Positions 1 through 64,000 of a stretch of 64,000 nt of DNA are shown one piece after another (position 1 is the stretch's first letter; the number at the start of each line of letters is the position of its first letter). Made by a program: the position numbers and the translations under genes. Below the pieces are notes generated by a model. It did no database searches, had not been told where the DNA came from, and saw only the letters and a program-made list of their open reading frames with translations. This DNA comes from Penicillus capitatus (lineage: Eukaryota; Plantae; Chlorophyta). The stretch spans positions 1,022,477-1,086,476 of the forward strand of contig OZ287699.1 in NCBI GenBank assembly GCA_965649825.1, written 5' to 3'.

Positions 1-157
1 GAGGAGGATACCGCCGTGGCCGAGGAGGAGGATACCGCCGTGGCCGAGGAGGAGGATACCGCCGTGGCCGAGGAGGAGGATACCGCCGTGGCCGAGGAGG
101 AGGATACCGCCGTGGCCGAGGAGGAGGATACCGCCGTGGCCGAGGAGGAGGATACCG
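1..157 (+). repeat. Perfect 24-bp coding tandem repeat (GAGGAGGAGGATACCGCCGTGGCC, encoding EEEDTAVA), 5 full plus partial copies, running off the window start
   Basis: Units at 22-45, 46-69, 70-93, 94-117 and 118-141 are identical by direct reading. Confidence 0.97.
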
Positions 158-2441
158 TTGTTCCCGAGGAGCCTACAGTATCAACAGCCATCTCCGATGT
201 AGAGAAGGAGGAGGAAGAAGAGACCGAATCGGCCGAGCAAGCCGCCATCTCCGAGTCATTGCCCGGTATCAGCGACGAAGAGGAGCCAGTTATCGAAACT
301 CCCTCTCCATCGGAGGATGCAATCCCATCTGTCTCGCCGATCGAATCGCCGCCGACAGAGTCCACGACAGACTCGTCGCAGGAAGCACCACCCTCGGAAC
401 CAGAAACGACGTCGAAGCAGGAACCCGTCGTCGATCCCGAGGACGTCGAAGCCGCAGAGCCGTCTTCGCCAGGACAGTCGCCCGTGCACCCGGAAGAAGA
501 GGATCAAGTCCAGGAGGAAGAGGAGGATCAAGCAGCCGGCTCCTCGGCGACCGGTGAGGATCCTGTCGAATCGTCGACGGGCGCGACGGAGGAGGCCCCC
601 GTGGCAGCGAAGGCAGCAGAACCTCAGGCGCCGACAACCTTCTATCCATCGGCCCTGGGATCTCGGCAACAGGTCTCCACGTTGGCCGCCCTGAAGGAGA
701 TCTTGGGCAGCGCCTTCGCCAATGCGACCAACGTCAAGACGGACGTCGAGACGGAGGAAGGAAGAGTGGCCATCCTGATCGAGGAGGGTGGCGATCTGCA
801 GCTGGAGGGACTGGCGATCGGACCCATGGAGGGCGTGGACGTCCTCGTGAAGGTCGCCGCCGGCGGAGAGCTGAGACTCGACGACGTCTCCATTCGCGAT
901 CGTCCGCAGCGTCGACTCAGGAAGGCCCTGAACGGCCGGGCCTCGATCAAGACGGGTCTGCTCGTCGACGGCGGCTCCGTCGTTTCCATCCGCGACTCCA
1001 CCTTCGAATCGGCCACCGACACGATGATCAGGGTCGCCGGAGGATCCCATCTCTCCTGCTCGGGATGCGTCTTCAGCAACAACGCCGGAGACAGAGGGGG
1101 AGCGCTGCTCGTCCGGGATTCGACCCTGCACCTCCGATCGTGCAGGATGACGGAGAACTCTGCGAACACGGGAGGCGCCGTCCACTTCGACGCAAGCGGC
1201 AGCGCTGCGGACTTCGATGCCTCAGTGCTGATCGAGGACACTCTGTTCTCCAGAAACGAGGCCCGCGGAAGAGGTGCCGGCGTCTACACGAGTTCCGCGC
1301 GGGCGATCCACATCGTAGACAGCAGGTTCCAACACGGCTCTGCGTCAGACGGCGGCGCCGTTTACATTCAGGATGTACGCATTGCTCAGATCGACCGTTC
1401 CGATTTCATCGACAACAAGGCCGATGGGTCGGGAGGTGGTCTCGTTGCCAAGTCGACTGAGACGCTGTCCGTTCTCAAATCCACTTTCAAGAACAACGAA
1501 GCGTTAGGTTCATTTGCTGGTGCTGGGTTCATGAGCAACTGCAGCGATGCAACATTCAGGTCCACCAATTTCGTTGATAATTATGCTGTGGAAGGAGGCG
1601 CATTGGCAAATATTGCTTACTCCACGCATCTAAGTAAATTCTATCTCCAAAACACTCAGTTCATGAACAACAAGGCCGACAATCTCGGCGGCGCATTACT
1701 TATACGTGGAGACACGAAATCTGAGGCATCTCACGAGGACGAGCGATCGCAGTCTGAATCTTTTTTGGCATCCATCAACTTAACCAGTTTTTCTGGAAAC
1801 TCTGCTAGGAAGGGCGGTGGAGTCTTTATCTCCTCCGACGTTTCGATAGATTTTGACGTGAAAATTGCCATGCAGCGTAGCAACTTTACGCAGAATAAAG
1901 CATCTGAAACAGGCGGGGGTATATACTGCGGAAATCATTCCAGAGTAGTGCTGTCCTTCTCAAAATTTGAACACAACAAGGCCTACAAAGGCATCAACTG
2001 TGCCGAGCATTGTGGATGTCAAGTAAATGCCTCTTACACTGTCTGCTTAAATCAACTCACTCTTTTGTTTAGGTAACTCTGACGAATTCACTGTCCCATT
2101 TGTCTGGAAACGAAGAACGCAGTCGCTTGATTCAAGACACGTGCATATCAGACGGAGCGGAATCGCCTCGTTCTTCCGGAAAGAAATCATCCTATCTTAT
2201 AGTCTATGTCTGTCTGAGTTTGGGTGTCGTCTTCGTTTTCTCAGTCATAGCTGCCGTGATCGTTGTTGTCAAGAAGCGTAGAATGCCGGAAAGAGAAAGT
2301 AGCGTTTCTCATGATGAAGAGCAAAGTTTATTGTCACCTGACAATATGATTGACGAAACGCACTCACCTGACAATATGATTGACGAAACGGACTTCTGCA
2401 CAATGAACGCAGGAGATGAGGAAGACACATCGTTTATCTGA
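1..2441 (+). CDS. Type I membrane surface protein with acidic low-complexity stalk, Pmp/POMP-like right-handed beta-helix repeats and C-terminal TM helix (5'-truncated by window edge); paralog A
   Basis: Frame +1 open from base 1. About 10 FxxN...GGA(L/V/I) repeats (e.g. FSNNAGDRGGALLV, FMNNKADNLGGALLI). GT-AG intron 2023-2072 (50 bp) joins in frame to exon 2073-2441, which encodes TM YLIVYVCLSLGVVFVFSVIAAVIVVV followed by KKRR; stop is TGA. Confidence 0.8.
2334..2390 (+). repeat. 30-bp tandem duplication in the cytoplasmic tail of paralog A (SPDNMIDET x2)
   Basis: TCACCTGACAATATGATTGACGAAACG occurs at 2334-2360 and 2364-2390. Confidence 0.95.
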
Positions 2442-4470: not shown

Positions 4471-7400
4471 AACTTCTCTAGCTGACGAAAGTGCAGTTTT
4501 TTCGTCCAAACCACAATTCTGAACGATCCGTTTTTCGATCACACTCCGAATGCTCTGTCTATTGCGTCGTCCGAAGAACCAAGTCTACCGGTCTGTGCAC
4601 GACTGCGCGCTCGGGTGCGTCAAACAAAGAACGCTTCGCGCGCGATGTGCGATGCATTTCCTGCTCGTCGAAGTGTACCGGCGAATAGCGGGTCTACTTT
4701 TCAACTTAGAGTTTCGCTGGCTGACGTGGACGGTGCCGTCGCTTTGCTTTGGAGGGAGACAGCGAATGTGACGGATTCTTCAAGGCGACGAAATCCGGAT
4801 TTGATAACCACTGGGACTGTTACCAAAGACGGCGTCCATTTCTGCGAAGAATGACCCTAAGAGTTGTCACGGCTGTGCGGTATTGCCGGCGGCTTTTTTG
4901 AGCAGGGTGGCCGCGAGAAACGACAGTCGCGATGACTGTCGCCCATACCAATGCAACTCGAAAACGAAACATGGGGTCGACACGGAAACGGTCACTCGAA
5001 AAATTGATCTTTAAAACAGACAATCATCCACACAAAAATGGAGATCTTATAGCTGTCCAAGGGATCTGGCTGTCATATCGTGACCGCCTAGATTTCTGAG
5101 GGTTCTGTCTCCGAAGGGGCGCTTACACGACATGTCATGTCACCTGTGGCATATAAGGACATGACCGTGGACACATGTGGACCTTTATCTCTGTAAGCGT
5201 GAAAGTTTTCTTTTGACAATAGCGTCGATCTCTAATTGTCTCATGTTGCCCATTTCAGTGGCACAAACTGCTGGGGTGATGGCTGGGTTGTTTAGTCGAG
5301 CACCTTCTGCTGCTGGCCAACGGCCAACGACGAAATTGAGGCGAGAAAGGAACAGCAAACTTGGACTTTGAAGCAAGATCAGAGAAGAGAAATTCTTTGA
5401 TATAAGGGATAGATCTTTACGCATGCTACGGGGGGAGTCAGCCGAGCATCAAGACAGTCGGCATTAAATTCCCCTCTAAACAACCTGCTTTCTTGTCAGT
5501 CTAGTTTGAACAATGTTCTCAGGCTTTTCTTACAGATATCCGCCCCAGGTTTCTTGGGTGTTGTTATTCCCTAGACGGATATTTCAAGGGATGATTCAAA
5601 CGCCATATAGGCAAATGAGGGATCATATACGTTCGAAGCTTCTCGAAGAACTCGGAAAGATGAAGAACCATTGAAAGATCGGATGCTTGTGTTTTTCTGT
5701 GACAAGCCGCGTTGACGAGTCAGGTAGGTATTTGTGAGTAGAGAATGACGTTGCCTGACAAAGGGATGTCTCACTTATCCACAGGTATTTAGATGATGAA
5801 ATGGTATTGCTGTTATTGCTCACAAAAGGGAATTCCTGTCCGTTTACGCCCCTCGTTAAATACCTCTTGATCAGGAAGGCGCTAATACGCAATTGATCGC
5901 GATTACTGTAAATGTTGTGACTAGTCATCGCCGTTAATATCGTCCACAAGAGCTCACAGTGGCACTCGCGCTTGCGTCGGACAAACTAGCGAATGTAATG
6001 CAAAATCTTAAATCAGAATAATCCTCGACAGTGAAGCACCAAACCTCTTAATTGTAATACGCATCGATTCTCATTTGCCGACAGATAGGCTAATTTATAC
6101 TCCAAACAGAAACAAAGCCGACGCCCGTGCACAATGAAGTTTCTTTAGGAAACAAAGGAGCTTGAGATAGCGGCAAGATTCCGAAGGAAAGACATTGGAC
6201 GATATGGGTAACGACTTCCGCTATGTTACAGTCTATCGTTAAGAATGCGAAATCTTCCTCCTAAGCTTGGGATCGATGTAAAGGGAATTTCCATCTAATA
6301 TAGTAATGTTGTGCCCAGCTTAACCTAACATACCAGGCATCGCCTGTGGAAACGGATTTTTTTATTGAAAACACCAATCTCTGCAAAGGACAAAACGAAC
6401 AGCAAAGCGCTTATTTAACCGAAGAAGTAATAATACCGGAATTAGCAGAGAAAAGCTGGCGTGGGGATCGATACCTTTATCACGTCGAAGCAAAATTTCA
6501 TTCGCATTTTAATGGACCTCAGCGCTATGGATAGGTAGTTGCAAGAACAACTATCTGTCCCAAGCCATTGAGATAAAGGCGGGACTACAAGTAAGGATGT
6601 TAGTGTGAAACTACGGAAGGCTTAATGGAGCAATCGAACCAATTCTTAGGAAGCTATGATTGATGCCTGTGAGGTTAAGTGAGGAAGAAAAACCATGTCG
6701 GACTTGTTGAACATAGCAGTCAAAATGTCATTTTAGGAACAACGATAAAAGAGTTCTCAGATTAAGTTTTATCAGGTAAAGATTGATCTGAAACGATAGA
6801 AGAAGCAAAATCTTTGGCCATCACATGGTCTTAAAAACAATCAACTTTCGTGATCTCGACCGGTGCAATGTTTAGGGAATTTTAGCAAAAATATCCACAC
6901 AAAGATCTTTCGTGAATTATGACAACCGACACCCAAAAAGATAGAGACACGATGTCATTGGGGGACGTTATTTATTAGGCCTTGATCTAGTAGAGCTGTC
7001 TGTTATTCTGCTATGTAAATTTACGGGATAACGGGTTTTGGAACATGCTGGTCACTTGTGGATATGTCAATGTGAAAACAGATCATATGCACTTGAACCT
7101 AAAAGAGAAAATATTTAGGCACGATTGAAGAATTTACAGCTTAAAACGGACTAGCAAACTCTCTCCAAAGAACGAAATGCAAGACCAACAGTAATTTTCG
7201 AGAAAGAGAAAGACAGCAAGCAGACTGCATTTATTGAATGACCGACCACAAGATGCTAAATGGGTTTATTGTTATTTGGAACACAACGTTCGTGGGATTG
7301 TATTTACAGGTAGCATCTCAATGAAGCAAGCATTCAAACGTGCACGAGATTGGGTTTATTTATACCCTTTGTTTACGTTATTGCGAGAGATAGAAAGCGA

Positions 7401-11631: not shown

Positions 11632-14600
11632 ATGCGGTCGACCAAACGAACACTGTTCACGGGTTTTGCTGTGTTGTCCTTCCTGATTTTGTTGACCTCG
11701 CCCACAGCAAACGCGCTAGACATCTTCAATCGCCTGAGCTGGAAGAATCCTTTCGGTTTCCGGAGACAGTCGGAAAAACCGGTTGAAGATGACACGCCAA
11801 AAGAGTCTGAAGCGGTCGTCGTAAAATTCGGACAGCTCCCGACAAAGGACGACGACGTATCGAAAACGATGACAACGGCACTTACGTCACAGTCTGAAGA
11901 AAGCGTTTTCGACCGACCCGTCATTGTTCAAACACCAACGCTCGTTCCAGTCGAGGAGCTGACCGAGGAAGACACACAGCAAGGAGTAACATTTGATGAT
12001 GGGATGCCGATGGAGGATACAGTGGTGATGCCGGTAATAGGATTCGGAATGGGAATCGTGCCTGAGGCAGTAAAGTCATCTCAAGTGTCAGAGCCATTCA
12101 AAATGGATCTACCTTTGAAAAGTTCCTCAGCGGAAGAAATGCCAGTTGCTCAAGATAGTGAGACATCGCAGGCCATGCCACAACTCTTTTCCAAAGAAGT
12201 GATCTCTGTTCCCATGCTCCAAGCAGAACAAGAGAGCATGGAGGAAGAAGTTTCTTCTCCAACGAAAAAGGGCGATGATGTTATATCTAAGCAAAGCAGC
12301 TGGTCCGCATCTGGAATACTGGAGGAAGAGGAGTCCACTCAAATGGAAACGGAACAGATGGCTGAAACAGAGCCACAGACGGGTGATATGCCAATCACAG
12401 GCAGAGGTTTCTGGGGGGACATGTCAACCGTAAGCATACAACACGTAGTCGAAGAGCAGACCAAAGCTGAAGAACCAGTAGTCAGGGAAGAGGTCGCAGA
12501 GGGAAAGCCAGCCAAAACTGAAGAAGAGAAGGCAGAGGAAACAGATCTTGCCTTCAAAGCACTGTTTGACACAACTCACATTAAAGAAGATTTAGCCAAA
12601 GACACCACATCAAAACAGACAGAACATGAATCTAAAGGCGACGAACATCGTGAGACTGAAATGGCAGAAAGTGTGAAAGGCAGTGGCGGTTCTGAAGAAC
12701 AGACAATTGTCCCATTCATTCCAGGGAAAGTCATAATTCCAACAGGACAGAAGAGCCTCGGTTCCGTTCAGACGCCGGTTGATCGACCAGCTTCTCCCAG
12801 CATAGTCCTTCCAGTGAGTTCGATCGTAGCCAAGGGAGAAGAAGAGAGTACCACTGTGCCCGAGGAGCCCACTGCGTCGACGGCGATTTCTGATGTAGAG
12901 AAGGAGGAGGATACCGCCGTGACCGAGGAGCCCACAGTGTCCACAGTCATCTCCGATGTAGAGGAGAAGGAAGAAAAGGGCGCCACTGAAGCCGACAAGC
13001 CAACAGAGTCAACCGCCGTGGCCGAGGAGGAGGATACCGTGGTTCCCGAGGAGCCTACAGTATCAACAGCCATCTCCGATGTACAGAAGGAGGAGGATGC
13101 TGTCATGACCGAGGAGGAGGATCAAGCCGCCATCTCCGAGTCATTGCCCGGTATCGGCGACGAAGAGGAGCCAGTTATCGAAACTCCCTCTCCATCGGAG
13201 GATGCAATCCCATCTGTCTCGCCGATCGAATCGCCACCGACAGAGTCCACGCCAGACTCGTCGCAGGAAGCACCACCACCGGAACCAGAAACGACGTCGA
13301 AGCAGGAACCCGTCGTCGATCCCGAGGACGTCGAAGCCGCAGAGCCGTCTTCGCCAGGACAGTCGCTTGTGCACCCGGAAGAAGAGGATCAAGTCCAGGA
13401 GGAAGAAGAAGATCAAGCATCCGGCTCCTCGGCGACCGGTGAAGATCCTGTCGAATGGTCGACGGGCGCGACGGAGGAGGCCCCCGTGGCAGCGAAGGCA
13501 GCAGGACCTCAGGCGCCGACAACCTTCTATCCATCGGCCATGGGATCTCGGCAACAGGTCTCCACGATGGCTGCCCTGAAGGAGATCTTGGGCAGCGCCT
13601 TCGCCAATGCGACCAACGTCAAGACGGACGTCGAGACGGAGGAAGGAAGAGTGGCCATCCTGATCGAGGAGGGCGGCGATCTGCAGCTGGAGGGACTGGC
13701 GATCGGGCCCATGGAGGGCGTGGACGTCCTCGTGAAGGTCGCCGCCGGCGGAGAGCTGAGACTCGACGACGTCTCCATTCGCGATCGTCCGCAGCGCCGA
13801 CTCAGGAAGGCCCTGAACGGCCGGGCCTCGATCAAGACGGGTCTGCTCGTCGACGGCGGCTCCGTCGTGTCCATCCGCGACTCCACCTTCGAATCGGCCA
13901 CCGACACGATGATCAGGGTCGCCGGAGGATCCCATCTCTCCTGCTCGGGATGCGTCTTCAGCAACAACGCCGGAGACAGAGGGGGAGCGCTGCTCGTCCG
14001 GGATTCGACCCTGCACCTCCGATCGTGCAGGATGACGGACAACTCTGCGAACACGGGAGGCGCCATCCACTTCGACGCAAGCGGCAGCGCTGCGGACTTC
14101 GATGCCTCTGTGCTGATCGAGGACACTCTGTTCTCCAGAAACGAGGCCCGCGGGAGAGGTGCCGGCGTCTACACGAGTTCCGCGCGGGCGATCCACATCG
14201 TAGACAGCAGGTTCCAACACGGCTCTGCGTCAGACGGCGGCGCCGTTTACATTCAGGATGTACGCATTGCTCAGATCGACCGTTCCCATTTCATCGACAA
14301 CAAGGCCGATGGGTCGGGAGGTGGTCTCGTTGCCAAGTCGACTCAGACGCTGTCCGTCCTCAAATCCACTTTCAAGAACAACGAAGCGTCCGGTTCATTT
14401 GCTGGTGCAGGGTTCATCAGCAACTGCAGCGATGCAACATTCAGGTCCACCAATTTCGTTGATAATCGTGCCATGGAAGGAGGCGCATTGGCATACATCG
14501 CCCCTTCTGGACAAGCTGACAAAATCTATCTCCAGAACACTCTGTTTGAAGAAAACAATGCAGAGAAAAGGGGAGGAGCACTACTGATCCAAAGAGACAG

Positions 14601-15249
14601 AGACGACGATATAACAGAAATCTCACAGTCTCTCTTGGCATTGGTAAATCGTACTGCTTTCATCTCAAACTCTGCACAAAGAGGAGGTGCAGTATTCGTA
14701 TCTTCGCAAGATGTGGAAAAATCCGATGTGAAGATTTCAGTTAGCAGATCGAACTTCACGCAGAATAAAGCGCACGAAAAGGGAGGTGGAGTATTTTGTG
14801 ATAGTTCGACCGTGGTGTTTTCCTACGCCTATTTTGAGCACAACGAAGCTGCTGAAGCCATGAATTGTGCCGAGCATTGTGGTTGTCAGGTAAAGTACTC
14901 TTACACGTGTTCAAGCTTAATATTTTTTGTTCAGGCAACGTTGGAAAACCCGTTGTCACATCTCTCTGATAATGTTGTACGGAGCAGGTGGATTCAGGAT
15001 ACGTGTACAAGAGACGACGTCCATTCAATTACCGAATCTGAGAACAACGGCGCGCATCTCATGGTGTACATCTATGTGACACTGAGTGTTGTGCTTGTTT
15101 TCCTGATCATGGCCATTGTGATCGTCGTTAAGAAGCGCACCACGTTCACTGAACGAAGAACAAGTCGTTTGACACACAGAAGTCTGTCAAGCTATGTCGG
15201 TCCAAGTCGGTCTCAAAGTGCCATGTCTGTACCGTTTCAGCGAGAGTAA
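11632..15249 (+). CDS. Type I membrane surface protein with signal peptide, long acidic S/T/E/P-rich stalk, Pmp-like beta-helix and TM helix; paralog B
   Basis: 1205-codon ORF. Signal peptide MRSTKRTLFTGFAVLSFLILLTSPTANA, FxxN/GGA repeats, TM LMVYIYVTLSVVLVFLIMAIVIVV followed by KKR. A probable 45-bp in-frame intron at 14890-14934 lies at the same position (after HCGCQ) as the intron in paralog A. Confidence 0.85.
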   Translation: MRSTKRTLFTGFAVLSFLILLTSPTANALDIFNRLSWKNPFGFRRQSEKPVEDDTPKESEAVVVKFGQLPTKDDDVSKTMTTALTSQSEESVFDRPVIVQTPTLVPVEELTEEDTQQGVTFDDGMPMEDTVVMPVIGFGMGIVPEAVKSSQVSEPFKMDLPLKSSSAEEMPVAQDSETSQAMPQLFSKEVISVPMLQAEQESMEEEVSSPTKKGDDVISKQSSWSASGILEEEESTQMETEQMAETEPQTGDMPITGRGFWGDMSTVSIQHVVEEQTKAEEPVVREEVAEGKPAKTEEEKAEETDLAFKALFDTTHIKEDLAKDTTSKQTEHESKGDEHRETEMAESVKGSGGSEEQTIVPFIPGKVIIPTGQKSLGSVQTPVDRPASPSIVLPVSSIVAKGEEESTTVPEEPTASTAISDVEKEEDTAVTEEPTVSTVISDVEEKEEKGATEADKPTESTAVAEEEDTVVPEEPTVSTAISDVQKEEDAVMTEEEDQAAISESLPGIGDEEEPVIETPSPSEDAIPSVSPIESPPTESTPDSSQEAPPPEPETTSKQEPVVDPEDVEAAEPSSPGQSLVHPEEEDQVQEEEEDQASGSSATGEDPVEWSTGATEEAPVAAKAAGPQAPTTFYPSAMGSRQQVSTMAALKEILGSAFANATNVKTDVETEEGRVAILIEEGGDLQLEGLAIGPMEGVDVLVKVAAGGELRLDDVSIRDRPQRRLRKALNGRASIKTGLLVDGGSVVSIRDSTFESATDTMIRVAGGSHLSCSGCVFSNNAGDRGGALLVRDSTLHLRSCRMTDNSANTGGAIHFDASGSAADFDASVLIEDTLFSRNEARGRGAGVYTSSARAIHIVDSRFQHGSASDGGAVYIQDVRIAQIDRSHFIDNKADGSGGGLVAKSTQTLSVLKSTFKNNEASGSFAGAGFISNCSDATFRSTNFVDNRAMEGGALAYIAPSGQADKIYLQNTLFEENNAEKRGGALLIQRDRDDDITEISQSLLALVNRTAFISNSAQRGGAVFVSSQDVEKSDVKISVSRSNFTQNKAHEKGGGVFCDSSTVVFSYAYFEHNEAAEAMNCAEHCGCQVKYSYTCSSLIFFVQATLENPLSHLSDNVVRSRWIQDTCTRDDVHSITESENNGAHLMVYIYVTLSVVLVFLIMAIVIVVKKRTTFTERRTSRLTHRSLSSYVGPSRSQSAMSVPFQRE

Positions 15250-58798: not shown

Positions 58799-60295
58799 AT
58801 GAATCCGCTTTCAGAAACAGTCGAAGTTGCATCTCCCAACGCCGACGAAGGCAGCGATAACGGTCTGTTGTCTATCTCACATGACATCGTTCGAATGTGC
58901 TGTGCACAGATGAAGCCGTCGGAAAGCCCTTCAGTCGGATGCAGAAAATGGCAGTGAAGTTTCTTCTGAACAATATATCCGCAGGCGTCATCATCGGCAG
59001 AGGCGGAACGAACATAACGGAGCTTCAGCAGCACTCGGGCGCCAGGTCAACTGAGCAATGCTCTGTTTGCTGTCTCAATGTGGTTACATATTTGCTGTGC
59101 TGGTTCAGGATTCAGTTGTCACGTAATAATGAGTTCTATCCTGGTACGAACGATCGTGTGATGCTCATTTCCGGAACGGTGAAGTCCGTCTTAACGGCTC
59201 TGTACTTAATACTAACCAAACTGCAATCGGCAAGAAAGACGGGTCAATCCGGAGAGCAGCGCAGCAAGAGCGAAAGTGACGATGGATTAGCTTCAGTGTT
59301 GAAACTTGTCATGCCGGCGGCGTGCTGTGGAGCCATTCTTGGCAAGGGCGGGAAAACAGTGAAACAGTTTGTTGCCGATTCCGGCGCCTCGATTTCGGTA
59401 CTTCCTCAGGTGAGGCCTTCATCTATGTACACATTGGCATGGGGATGACGGAGTGTCTCGGATGGTAGACGTACGTGGCACAAGAGACGGACAATCGCAT
59501 TATTTCCATTTCTGGAGAGCTCGAGCAGATTCTTCGTGCAGTGGCACACGTGGTTGCCAAAGTGGCCGGAGATCCTCAGTACATCAACAATGTTTCTCTG
59601 TCAGTCAACTATATGAGACCTCAATATCAGTCACAAAGTAAGACACTCCTGCGGATCGGCGTGCTGTATGGCTGGGCTGTTGTTCAGTGGCATATGCGAT
59701 GTACCCAGAAGAAATGGCAGGGCCCTATATGTCCTCTAACGGAATGAATATGCCGCGTGGCGGTGCAGTGCTGTATCCGAATCCTCCCTATCACCCAGAG
59801 CACCCAGCTGCAGCATATACGGAGACGGGACCTGCAGGATCTTCTCCGGCAGAGATGCCAGGATCTCCTTCCCATCGCTATCCTCCCATGGGTATGCCCA
59901 TGCCCATGCCAATGCCAATGGGCGTTCCGCTTCCCTGCGATAACCGGGGACCTCGTGTCGAGATGAGTCTGTCGATTCCGGACGATCGAATCGGAGCCAT
60001 CATTGGCAAAGGTGGCGATATCATTACCCAACTGCAAACCTTGGTCGGTGTGAAAATCATCATCTCTAGCCGCAACGAGTTCGAGCCCGGCACACGTAAC
60101 AGACGTGTCACGATCATCGGGGCACCAGATGCGGTTCAAGTTGCCTGCATGTGGATCTCGGTCAAGGAACGGTCCATGTTCTATGCTCCGACGGCCGGCA
60201 TGTATGGTGCAACTCCTTATGGTTGGGCTGTTCCGAGCGCATGGATGAGTGCACCGCCCTCTCCGCCACTGTCCGAAGCCAACGGCTATAACTAG
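58799..60295 (+). CDS. Triple KH-domain RNA-binding protein (BTR1/Nova-like)
   Basis: Three GxxG KH loops: AGVIIGRGGTNI, CGAILGKGGKTV and IGAIIGKGGDII; EFYPGTNDRV and EFEPGTRNRRVTI. Confidence 0.9.
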
Positions 60296-61578
60296 GCAAA
60301 CCAGTTTCAAAGTCTTATGAAAGCTCACTAGTGTGTGGGGGGTTTGTTATACTCTTGATGTGTCAACGACCAATACATCGTGTGTGGCATTCCTGACAGG
60401 GAATTTCGGGGAATGGCTGTGCTGGCTATCAATTCTCCACCCTCCTCAATTGCAGTGGGTACTAGCGTTCGATGAAACTTCTCTTAGACTGTTTGCTTTG
60501 CTTTGCTTTGTCTGTTTCCTTTTTGTTCCAAACAGCAGCCGCACTGAGTTTTCTCTGTTCGTGCAAGGCTCTGTGCTAGACGTTTGAGATCTTAGTGCGT
60601 TCAGCTTTGTTTCAGATGTGCTGAGCGATTATATCTGCTGAAATGAATACTCTTCTCACTAGTCTCATCTCATCAAACTAAAGCATCTCTCACTCGCACT
60701 AGGTCTGTCTTTTCCTATAGAGTTTCTCATTTCACCTGCAGAGGACTATCACCGCCCAAGGCCGGATCCAACGGACGATAGGCCTTTGGGTTGATTGTGT
60801 ATACTGTATGAAAAAACACATGAGAAATGGTTTTTCGGTGTGCTTAAAAATTCAACGCATCGCATGGATGGACGCTGTCCACTGCTGCTGTCTGATTTCT
60901 ATGGTGTTTGCTTTTGTGTACGGTTCGGTTGGCAGTGAGGCGTGATAAATCTTTCCACTCGGCATCAATCATCAAGATACCGGCATTAGGCCACATGTTT
61001 CCAGTTTCACAGACATCCATGTGTATTGCGTTTGTGTGTGTGCAGTGACAAATTCAGAAACAAAAAAAGGACACTGGCTCTATCTGTTCTGCTCTGTGCT
61101 GTGTCGTGCTGTACCGAGCATTTCTGCATCTCTGAACAGAAGTTTGCTTACACAACAACTTTGTATGCAAGATTGCGTTTAGGATTTAATATCACAGTCT
61201 GTTTATAAAAGCCTGCCTGTCTCCTTAAATCAAGGGACGACCTTGAGGGAGCACAGTGTTAATCCACCACCCACATCCAGAAAAGGCGAAAGGGACGACT
61301 TAACAATAGGGAGCCGTTTATTGACAGGTAAGTGAGTGTATATGCAATAAGCGGATGACAAATCCTTCGAGGGACGAAGAAGACAGTACGAGAGATGGAT
61401 GGATCTGACAGAACGGCAGTTTCCTTCCGGAGAGAACAGAAAAGCACACGAGGTATGACGGGAAAGATGGCGTCATTACAGATGCATGAGCGGTTTTCAT
61501 GATCTCTTTGGGAAGGACACGCAAAAAACATGAACCGACATGACCCTCGACAATGCAACCAAACTGCACAACTGTCTT

Positions 61579-63083
61579 TTATGAGACCCTTCTTTCTTCT
61601 CTGTTCCAAGAGAGCACACTCAAATCTCCGGGCTTTCGATTGGATCTCAGATCCATTCCCAGAATGATAATGCATGCAACGGCTGAAAGCGCACCGATGA
61701 CGAAATAGACAACCCCTGTAGAGAACATACACACATTCAGCAAAAAATGCTCCACGCTGATGGGTCATACCTATGACGGTGTTCTTTCCTCCAGTCCAGT
61801 TTGAAGTGCTCAGGATTAGCCGTTTCTGGCCGTCAAAATCATACGTGTTATACCGATGCGTGATCTTGAATGTCAACTTCGACCCTATGAAACACACATC
61901 CCGTTGCATTCCGATCACACAACGCCGCGAAACGGGGGACCTTTTGGAATGTCGTGATGGATGATGCCATACAACTTGCGAACCGTGGCTCTGGATCCAA
62001 CACGCATCCACACCATAAAATGCTCATCTTCATCCAGCGGGCCTGATCATCGACAACAGAGAGATGAGAAGAGAACGGCGGCCACCGATACCTTACCATC
62101 GATGGTTTTACCTCCGCGGTATTTTGCCTCTTTATTAAAGTACTGTGCTTCCATATCTCCATAAAGATACTTGCGATCCCACTCCGTCGCAATGCCTTTT
62201 TCCTAACAGGCATCTCTCTCTTCAGCAAGGCGCGTGCGATGGAAGAGATAGAACCGTCGCACCTCCATCTGAACATCCCCTAACGGCTCGTCCTGAGCGT
62301 CTTGGACAGACTCGAGGGTGAAGGAATCGTTGAAGAAGGAGTGTGCCATCAATCCACAAGGAAGTATGGGCCCTGCACAACATTCCGTCCTCCAGTATCA
62401 TCCATCTAAGCTCAATCATGTTCCACGTACGGGTCTGATCGATAGAGTCATCTTCTGGGTTCTTTGCGTATTGATAGGGTTTGCAATAATCACTTCCTGC
62501 TGGCTTGTCTCCTCCAAGCTGCTTCGGATCTTTGCTGCGAATGTATCTGAAATAGCAACCACTCACGATCGGGTTCCCCTGCTCTGCCTGCCGCTCACCT
62601 CTTATGGTTCTGGTAATAGTCTTTTAACTCGTAGTAGACGTACACCTAGGCATGCGCATTCATAAGAGATCGATTTTTGCTGTATCAACAGTGTCAGTAT
62701 TGCCACGTATTCTGCGAGATTTGGGTGTTTGTATGTACGATGGTTACCGGACTATTCATGTTCTCAGAAATTGAGAATATGTGATTTTCTGTATGAGTCT
62801 CATTCCCCCGCTGAATGATCTCTTTTCTTTCATCGTTTGTTAACCGCGTCTTATCATTCAACGTGAAATTGTCATATCTGAGGATCACTTCCGTATTTTC
62901 CAGTGTTTGCCAGAACAAGGCAGCTCCAAGAGGAATAGCCGCGACGGTGAGCATGCAGAAAAACACAGCCGAATAACACAGTGAGGGCGTGGGACTCATG
63001 CATGCTGACAATTCTTGTCGCACGAACTTCTTAAAGTAAGCAGAAAAGACAGATGGTTTCCGTGAAGCTTCCCCCTTGCTCAT
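61579..63083 (-). CDS. CDC50: CDC50/LEM3 family P4-ATPase beta subunit (ALA-interacting subunit), proximal-start isoform
   Basis: KKFVRQELSA..TM1, VYVYYELKDYYQNHKRY, PCGLMAHSFFND, FITHRYNTYDFDGQKRLILSTSNWTGGKN, and C-terminus KPGDLSVLSWN; TAA at 61579-61581. Confidence 0.92.
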
Positions 63084-63449
63084 TCCCAGCGCCGTGTCGT
63101 CGTACGAGTTCGACGGCAAGCGGCTCACGGAAGTCAGCGACATCGGACAGAGCTAACCAGCGAAGCCTCGACGACGTCAGCCACTGTCGTGTACGAAGAC
63201 GACAAAAAATAAGAAGCTCAGGTGACCGTGGTTATTTTACAAGATACTCAACGCGACGATGTGGCGATTGGCAAAAAGGACGGTGAAATGGGCACGCAGC
63301 GAGCGATATGACTATGGCATGTCGCTTCATCGACGCTTCTGCTCACAGTCGGATGATGAAAACTTCGTAGCTCGTATCTCAGTGGAAACGAGCGCGATGG
63401 CGACCCGCGTGTTCAAAAATACCCAACCCCCTCCTTTTTAGTGGCTTAC

Positions 63450-63840
63450 CGGTGAAGGCATCTTTTTGTCCGTTGTGATCTCCAAGAGTGACTGGTGTCC
63501 GGCATCCGCCTCTCGAATGCGTTGCAGTCTTAGCGAGTTATTTTCTGCCTTGAAATTGTCATACCTGGAAAGCAAAAGCAGCCCCATACATCGAGTGCTG
63601 ACAAGAAGAAATGGGTCATGTACTGGGTACGGACCTGTATGTAAAATCGATGTTTTGCTTAGAGAAGTAAAACAGTGCCCCACCCAGTGGCAGGGCCACG
63701 ACGGTAACAATGACGTAAAAACCAACGGCCCAGCTGAAGCGTGGGATCGGTTGCCATTTGCTTTTTGAATTTCCTTTGGCGAAACGCTGAAACCACTCAG
63801 GGCCATTGATAAGCGACGTCTTTTTATCGCTCATAGCCAT
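63450..63840 (-). CDS. Second CDC50 5' module (2 exons: 63840-63635 and 63564-63450), either alternative first exons or a partial duplicate
   Basis: MAMSDKK...WQPIP..TM1 (VALPLGGALF)...YRYDNF...KMPSP ends in the strong donor CCG|GTAAGC. It is homologous to the proximal exon, which ends NMNSP|GTAACC. No private downstream exons were found before 63083. Confidence 0.75.
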
Positions 63841-64000
63841 AACGCGTTCAGCCGGATGCTAACACACGAAAGAACGATACACAGCAGAGACGAATAAAAC
63901 AGCAGAAGGTACGCGTGCGGGCCAGCTAGTTCCAATCAATGTCGTCGTCATGTGTCCCATCTGTGACATCTATCTCTCGCGACGTGGGCGCATCGGGCCG

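Follow-up and report, generated by a model that had tools for sequence, protein, structure and literature searches.

The question raised by this locus is whether a single gene supplies two versions of a flippase subunit. CDC50 subunits are the beta-subunits required for most P4-ATPase flippases, and the part of the subunit that sets partner choice, trafficking, and activity has been probed mostly with artificial chimeras and truncations. The gene in question is a CDC50/Lem3 gene on the minus strand near the end of a 64,000-nucleotide (nt) stretch of the Penicillus capitatus genome (contig OZ287699.1, positions 1,022,477 to 1,086,476), which is called the window here. The gene very probably makes two versions of the CDC50 subunit. 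The explanation preferred here, with a probability of roughly 75%, is that one CDC50/Lem3 gene carries a tandem-duplicated 5' module and yields two mutually exclusive isoforms through alternative first exons.

The two copies of the module are called distal and proximal with respect to the gene body that they would share. The parts of the gene are as follows, in window positions.

63635..63840 (-), distal module exon 1, with the start codon, the cytosolic tail, and the first transmembrane helix (TM1); 206 nt
63565..63634 (-), intron within the distal module; 70 nt, GTCCGT..CCAG
63450..63564 (-), distal module exon 2, the first ectodomain stretch YDNF..KKMPSP; 115 nt
63144..63449 (-), non-coding stretch between the modules, within the 804-nt intron of the distal isoform
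62748..63143 (-), proximal module in one exon, with the tail, TM1, and the first ectodomain stretch ..ENMNSP
62646..62747 (-), intron from the proximal module to the shared acceptor exon; 102 nt
62599..62645 (-), first shared exon, VYVYYELKDYYQNHKR, starting VYVYYEL behind a CCTAG acceptor
61579..62546 (-), rest of the shared body, with the ectodomain core, the second transmembrane helix (TM2), and the C-tail
62546-62431, 62372-62263, 62202-62097, 62042-61941, 61884-61771, and 61715-61579 (-), the exons of this body, stop codon TAA

Distal exon 1 terminates 2 nt into the Arg codon of RYDNF, and the two distal exons together hold 107 codons. The proximal exon, when counted from 63083 (63083-62748), holds 112 codons. 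Both modules end with a phase-0 donor after the homologous M.SP (GTAAGC at 63449 for the distal module, GTAACC at 62747 for the proximal one), and exon 62645-62599 is the sole acceptor available to either of them. The intron from the distal module to the body (63450 to 62645) is 804 nt long and contains the proximal exon. The introns separating the later body exons are 52-60 nt. In a scripted exon assembly, either module joined to the body gave an intact open reading frame (ORF), of 350 amino acids (aa) with the distal module and 355 aa with the proximal module started at 63083.

A preliminary description of this locus had given its coordinates, donors, phases, and codon counts, and all of these were reproduced by the exon assembly and a minus-strand reading of 61000-64000. 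The 70-nt intron that it had placed in the distal module only was confirmed at its coordinates. It had also claimed that only one acceptor exon exists and that 63449-63084 holds no second copy, which was borne out by tblastn; no CDC50-like coding was found in 63449-63084. When both modules and the body were searched by tblastn, no further CDC50 piece and no second body were found in the 64-kilobase (kb) window or in the 20.6 kb around the gene, a stretch of the parent contig that extends 7.9 kb past the window end. No runs of N are present in either stretch. An assembly gap hiding a full second gene, which the description had considered, is thus excluded.

The contig of a close relative (L010) was reached via P0233, a 170-aa prokaryote-style ORF that reads through the introns of a near-identical gene. 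L010, 824 kb long and from another assembly, is collinear with the window locus, with 84% nt identity over 20 kb, and retains both modules, the internal distal intron, all donors and acceptors, and the body. An assembly artefact is excluded because two independent assemblies agree. Between the two, the exons show one in-frame 6-nt indel, in the proximal module, and no other; the introns are 63-84% identical and contain indels that are not multiples of three. The 102-nt intron behind the proximal module is 73.5% identical, with its donor and acceptor kept.

The window was also compared with the European Nucleotide Archive (ENA) record of the same contig, which is 1.58 Mb long and belongs to a metagenome assembly. 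Six single-base differences were found, at 63443, 63227, 62573, 62492, 62459, and 62424. All of them lie in 1 kb inside the CDC50 gene, the other 11.7 kb compared being identical, and the two exonic differences leave the protein unchanged. They may be a haplotype or polishing difference.

Both isoforms match the full Pfam CDC50 profile PF03381 with 224 bits (E ~3e-66; gathering score 28.6), covering positions 1-286 and 2-286 of its 286. AlphaFold models of the two isoforms, built on 86-sequence alignments, reached mean confidence scores (pLDDT) of 80 and 79. Helices are predicted at 33-60 and 301-328 in the distal isoform and at 35-62 and 308-335 in the proximal isoform. The predicted order within the module is the same in both: TM1 follows a short amphipathic helix and precedes a strand, a helix, and a second strand, the last of which pairs with the first strand of the body. 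The best Protein Data Bank (PDB) matches of both models are CDC50A chains, equally good for the two (E ~1e-23, TM-scores 0.65-0.74). As in the CDC50/Lem3 family (TMEM30, ALIS), two transmembrane helices flank a beta-sandwich ectodomain that keeps the Cys..PCG pair; among the aligned relatives, P166, C167, and G168 do not vary, and C144 is near-invariant (>=90% of sequences). The fold predicted here agrees with those of human CDC50A, yeast Cdc50p, and Lem3p, and the module boundary falls at about residue 116 of human CDC50A. By sequence, topology, and predicted fold, the protein is an ordinary CDC50/Lem3 member, and from the family it would be predicted to bind a P4-ATPase and to be required for the ER exit and activity of that ATPase. 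The two modules are structurally equivalent in the models. The motif before TM1 is kept as KWQPIP in the distal module and as FVRQEL in the proximal module, where the Trp is lost. Neither module carries an ectodomain cysteine, so that the first disulfide of human CDC50A, which we take to be C91-C104, has no counterpart in either of them.

The modules are homologous to each other, with 28% identity over 97 residues (E 5e-16). At the DNA level, no similarity is left between them except 17 nt at RYDNF, and none is left between their upstream regions. The protein alignment indicates that the homology of the two modules is real and old.

The age of the duplication can be judged from Caulerpa. The best database matches to the spliced protein are three transcript models of gene g6954 of Caulerpa lentillifera (EukProt EP00210 P007270-P007272). 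Models t1 and t2 have a proximal-type N-terminus (..IIWQTHQNTEIILRYD..), and model t3 has a distal-type N-terminus (..RPEWFEAF..GKWKPIPNFEWTIGFF..). All three run ..ESP|VYVYYELKDF into a common body, which is identical among them except for a 20-residue insert in t1 and t3. Like the window gene, g6954 thus carries both types of N-terminus on one body with the identical junction position. Identity between the two genes is 40% for the distal module, 31% for the proximal module, and 60% for the body; the comparison is one of protein models only. With the modules alone, the reciprocal best pairs are distal with t3 (90 bits) and proximal with t2 (75 bits), and the distal and proximal modules of the window score 55 bits against each other. 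Neighbor-joining (NJ) trees of the modules recover a distal-type clade with 100% and a proximal-type clade with 98.5% bootstrap, and the tree of the body groups the window gene, its relative, and Caulerpa at 99.5%. Because the distal and proximal types each pair orthologously with Caulerpa, the duplication predates the split from Caulerpa. The earlier claim of an old duplication with both frames intact therefore stands, with orthologous pairs in Caulerpa and intact, selected modules in L010. The Caulerpa models were made by AUGUSTUS with exon-junction hints from RNA sequencing (RNA-seq) (PMC6476727). Such hinted models are compatible with transcript support for both forms.

The insert in the Caulerpa models lies in the ectodomain. 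It comprises 20 residues (STTECVLISITEHFMYVLIG) in P0010 (t1) and P0002 (t3), and a single Arg stands there in P0001 (t2). It has the appearance of a retained intron or of an alternatively used splice site, which would be a second variable point of these models.

The next relative is Bryopsis sp. KO-2023, whose BSKO_05174 (GMH37301.1) is the closest single-module ortholog. Its module is one exon that lacks the internal intron and is separated from the VYVYYE exon by a 474-nt intron, and no second module was found within 10 kb on either side of the gene (22.4 kb examined). The Bryopsis N-terminus is nearer to the distal type (53-57 bits) than to the proximal type (38-42 bits), which makes the distal copy the more conservative of the two. 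The PDB comparison agrees, as the alignment of the distal isoform with human CDC50A begins at TM1 and that of the proximal isoform only at the end of its module. A one-residue insertion before the W.P motif is common to the Bryopsidales-type sequences; other chlorophyte CDC50s are without it. On the CDC50 gene sequence, the source alga is nearer to Caulerpa than to Bryopsis. The timing of the duplication relative to the P0003/P0004 lineage was considered as well. The NJ tree makes the two module types sisters at only 62.5% support, and by pairwise scores P0003 and P0004 are closer to the proximal type, the Bryopsis-like sequences closer to the distal type. The Logan transcripts P0003-P0007 have one module each and no second one in their untranslated regions (UTRs); they come from separate samples and do not decide the module number of a species.

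These relatives also bear on the start codons, which the preliminary description had placed at 63840 and 63083. Its exon frames hold, and both starts are revised. The distal module has ATGs at 63840 and 63834; the first of them reads ATC in the close relative, which leaves 63834 as the conserved start, in agreement with the start of Caulerpa t3. The proximal ORF is open further 5' to an in-frame conserved ATG at 63143, 20 codons beyond 63083. This extension (MSLTSVSRLPSNSYDDTALG) shows 4 synonymous and 2 nonsynonymous changes between the window and the relative, and a TAG stands three codons upstream of the 63143 ATG in both. The extended proximal module (132 aa) aligns end to end with the proximal-type module of Caulerpa (134 aa). 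The true proximal start is thus probably at 63143 and not at 63083, judging from these alignments. With that start, the proximal tail would be ~20 residues longer than the distal tail.

The ratio of nonsynonymous to synonymous substitution rates (dN/dS) was calculated by the Nei-Gojobori method between the window and L010, with Fisher tests against equal rates. A comparison of both modules with a relative, proposed in the preliminary description, gave 0.17 for the distal module (dS 0.61, p = 2e-9) and 0.50 for the proximal module (p = 0.02). The shared body gave 0.15 (p = 9e-18). Within the distal module, dN/dS is 0.08 for the tail, 0.16 for TM1, and 0.21 for the ectodomain stretch, taken as codons 61-107 and including the last 8 codons of exon 1. 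The proximal tail (0.05) and TM1 (0.12) are strongly constrained. Purifying selection maintains both modules across species.

The preferred explanation can then be laid out in steps. In this siphonous green alga of the Bryopsidales, the 5' coding module was duplicated in tandem before the split from Caulerpa. The duplicated unit runs from the N-terminal tail through TM1 to roughly the 45th ectodomain residue (human CDC50A 1 to ~116). Each copy has a start codon of its own, and the phase-0 donors of the two stand at homologous codons. Either copy would join the single VYVYYEL exon, and two mutually exclusive isoforms would result, with the ectodomain core, TM2, and the C-tail common to both. 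The distal isoform would be transcribed from upstream of 63840 and spliced over the 804-nt intron that holds the proximal exon. For the proximal isoform, transcription would most likely begin at an internal promoter within the conserved stretch that precedes 63143. A second promoter is the simplest reading because the proximal exon has its own ATG and no obligatory acceptor. For the source alga, we infer both the splicing itself and the two promoters; that alternative promoters produce the two forms is somewhat favored.

The sequence in front of the proximal exon points in the same direction. The block 63310-62910 is the best conserved of the gene (91-94% to L010), exceeding most coding exons and, by a wide margin, the introns and synonymous sites. 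The ~250 nt ahead of 63083 that are conserved at 91-94% consist of ~170 nt of non-coding sequence and the 60-nt ORF extension, the upstream ~170 nt (to 63310) being non-coding because a stop is present and the region contains indels that are not multiples of three. The 100-nt windows spanning 63309-63110 are 92% identical to L010. Over its whole length, 63449-63084 is 89% identical, versus the 63-84% of the introns. A TAAAATA lies inside a 31-nt invariant block, 156 nt ahead of the 63083 ATG. This conservation makes the ~170 nt on the 63310 side of the proximal exon a candidate for the promoter and 5'UTR that the proximal isoform would use. Two promoters are favored indirectly by the Caulerpa transcript models too.

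Both isoforms could also come from a single promoter by mutually exclusive splicing, if a non-coding leader were joined in some transcripts to the distal exons and in others to an acceptor just before the proximal start. A suitable site exists: a conserved TTAG (63153) lies 9 nt upstream of the 63143 ATG, with a branch-like CTGAC ~27 nt before it, and the genuine acceptors of the gene are no richer in pyrimidines. However, the sequence upstream of the distal ATG offers no identifiable leader exon or donor, and there is just ~430 nt of room there, as the same-strand upstream gene appears to end at about that distance. The 170 nt upstream of the TTAG are strongly conserved as well, which suits a promoter and 5'UTR better than the end of an intron. 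Splicing from a shared leader is thus unlikely, and alternative first exons with their own promoters are retained as the preferred explanation.

The remaining alternatives concern the distal module. As a dead or dying partial duplicate, a pseudo-exon, it would lie outside any functional product; its unusually long intron to the body and the unseen distal transcript would be in keeping with this. Against it, the distal dN/dS is as low as that of the body. Distal exon 1 is 87% identical to L010 at the nt level without indels, and the distal exons contain no frame-breaking indels although the neighboring introns do; the 70-nt distal intron, at 71% identity, has indels that are not multiples of three and keeps its GT and AG. 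The distal donor reads GTAAGC in the relative as well. Caulerpa t3 joins an orthologous distal-type module to its body, although the bodies are only 60% identical, and, set beside human CDC50A and Bryopsis, the distal module is more canonical than the proximal one. A decaying partial duplicate is excluded because the modules are constrained in dN/dS and free of frame-breaking indels, and a pseudo-exon is very improbable.

It is just as improbable that the distal module is a separate small gene for a truncated single-pass protein that is never spliced to the body. Reading past the distal donor in the window adds only 3 codons before a stop, as such a gene would allow, but the same read-through in the relative runs for more than 40 codons of unrelated sequence, and there is therefore no common C-terminus. 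Moreover, the last codon of the module is exactly the one after which the body follows in the proximal form and in Caulerpa t3. Least probable is one protein with both modules, made by splicing the distal donor to the TTAG at 63153 (..MPSP-LCP-MSLTS..., with the AG of the conserved TAG in 63144-63155 as acceptor), since the frame happens to be open there but would be so by chance at a third of junctions, the topology would be inverted by a second TM1, leaving the ectodomain core in the cytosol, and the Caulerpa models have one module each.

A further junction within the proximal exon was noted. At 62875-62885 (..CCTCAG|ATATGAC..), a CCTCAG|A stands at the position homologous to the distal intron. 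Splicing of the distal exon-1 donor to this site would be in frame and could in principle produce a chimera in which the tail and TM1 are distal and the ectodomain stretch is proximal. Conservation of its AG is uninformative because the invariant Arg codon forces AG.

Several points weigh against two isoforms from alternative first exons. The 804-nt intron is 8-15x the length of the other introns of the gene (52-102 nt). The proximal ectodomain stretch is nearly neutral between the two close relatives, with a dN/dS of 0.93. The conservation upstream of the proximal exon could mean splicing control or another element. Transcripts of the window gene or its close relative are absent from the searched collections. 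The Caulerpa isoforms are gene models, for which the evidence requirement for alternative transcripts is unstated (PMC6476727).

The segment exchanged between the isoforms can be placed on a solved structure. In the ATP8A1-CDC50a structure, the CDC50A tail and TM1 contact the ATPase (10.1101/666321). The tail touches the cytoplasmic loops of the ATPase, TM1 packs against M9/M10, and deletion of the tail reduces activity (10.1101/666321). By analogy, the swapped segment is an ATPase-contacting one because tail and TM1 make these contacts in the structure, and the isoforms would differ in the tail, facing the cytoplasmic loops, and in TM1, facing the M9/M10 helices. PEWF, KW.PIP, and LPLGG are conserved within the distal type and different in the proximal type, whereas RQ.L, FF..L, and IWQT..NTE.ILRYD are conserved within the proximal type and different in the distal type. 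These type-specific conserved residues agree with a functional divergence of the isoforms. Speculatively, the isoforms might differ in ATPase partner or membrane destination. More tentatively still, the modules could form a natural specificity switch that sends one CDC50 core to different P4-ATPases or compartments in a coenocytic alga. If this were true, the partner- or sorting-determining part of the beta-subunit would be its first ~110-130 residues.

The surroundings of the gene are as follows. The downstream neighbor is a KH-domain gene on the opposite strand (window 59687-60295 (+)), and 60610-60809, at 96-98% identity to the relative, is the most conserved part of the 20-kb comparison. 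Two very long uninterrupted ORFs of 686 and 1205 aa lie at window 16-2076 (+) and 11632-15249 (+) and contain repeats of the right-handed beta-helix and Chlamydia-PMP types (Pfam PF13229, PF02415). Their lack of introns is unusual here, as many tiny introns interrupt the other genes of this genome. No tRNA or Rfam matches were found within the window. Beyond the window end, L004 holds a pair of ORFs at 4782-4985 (-) and 5187-5825 (+). One of them looks like ribosomal protein L26 (KOW-like), as judged by eye, and the second has a weak match to the ribosomal L5 C-terminal domain. The L26-like and L5-like ORFs, which lie upstream of the window end, stand in the same order in the relative's contig.

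Other loci with two such modules were sought in several collections. Among 263 full-length CDC50s, the only pair with an identical C-terminus and different N-termini was that of Caulerpa. The other candidate of this screen, P0026, was rejected as merely a 5'-extended ORF. A search with the distal module and 28 body residues returned only the window's own ORF, the word index requiring shared 5-mers. When 10 relatives were used for a profile search, the gain was limited to distant CDC50s (~30% identical) of marine metatranscriptomes. The 41 loci from a scan of JGI metagenomes included no further dual-module locus; nearly all had an identity of only 26-35%, apart from a short segment with 42%. 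A literature search in one library for alternative first exons, promoters, or N-terminal splice variants of CDC50/TMEM30A found none that were relevant, which is absence of evidence; it agrees with the remark in the preliminary description that no such arrangement was known to be described for CDC50.

If the preferred explanation is right, the locus is a natural domain-swap experiment kept since before the Caulerpa split, and it marks the tail, TM1, and proximal ectodomain as the tunable part of the subunit. CDC50 subunit diversity could then arise without whole-gene duplication. Flippase-subunit counts from genome annotation would be affected, as single-isoform models would miss the second version.

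To our knowledge, CDC50 diversity in known organisms consists of whole-gene paralogs, such as CDC50A/B/C, Cdc50/Lem3/Crf1, and ALIS1-5. The window locus differs from these families in having two versions of the tail, TM1, and first ectodomain stretch on a common core. Variable first exons joined to constant exons are known from the UGT1A locus and the clustered protocadherins, and alternative exons that arose by tandem duplication are well known. With UGT1A and the protocadherins, the window locus shares tandem, diverged 5' coding exons that have their own starts, same-phase donors, and one common acceptor, and a variable part that includes a membrane or specificity-determining segment. It differs from them in having only two variable modules, one of which is split by a small intron, and in that its individual promoters are inferred. 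As the general principle is already familiar, the locus is of value mainly to flippase research and to the study of siphonous algae.

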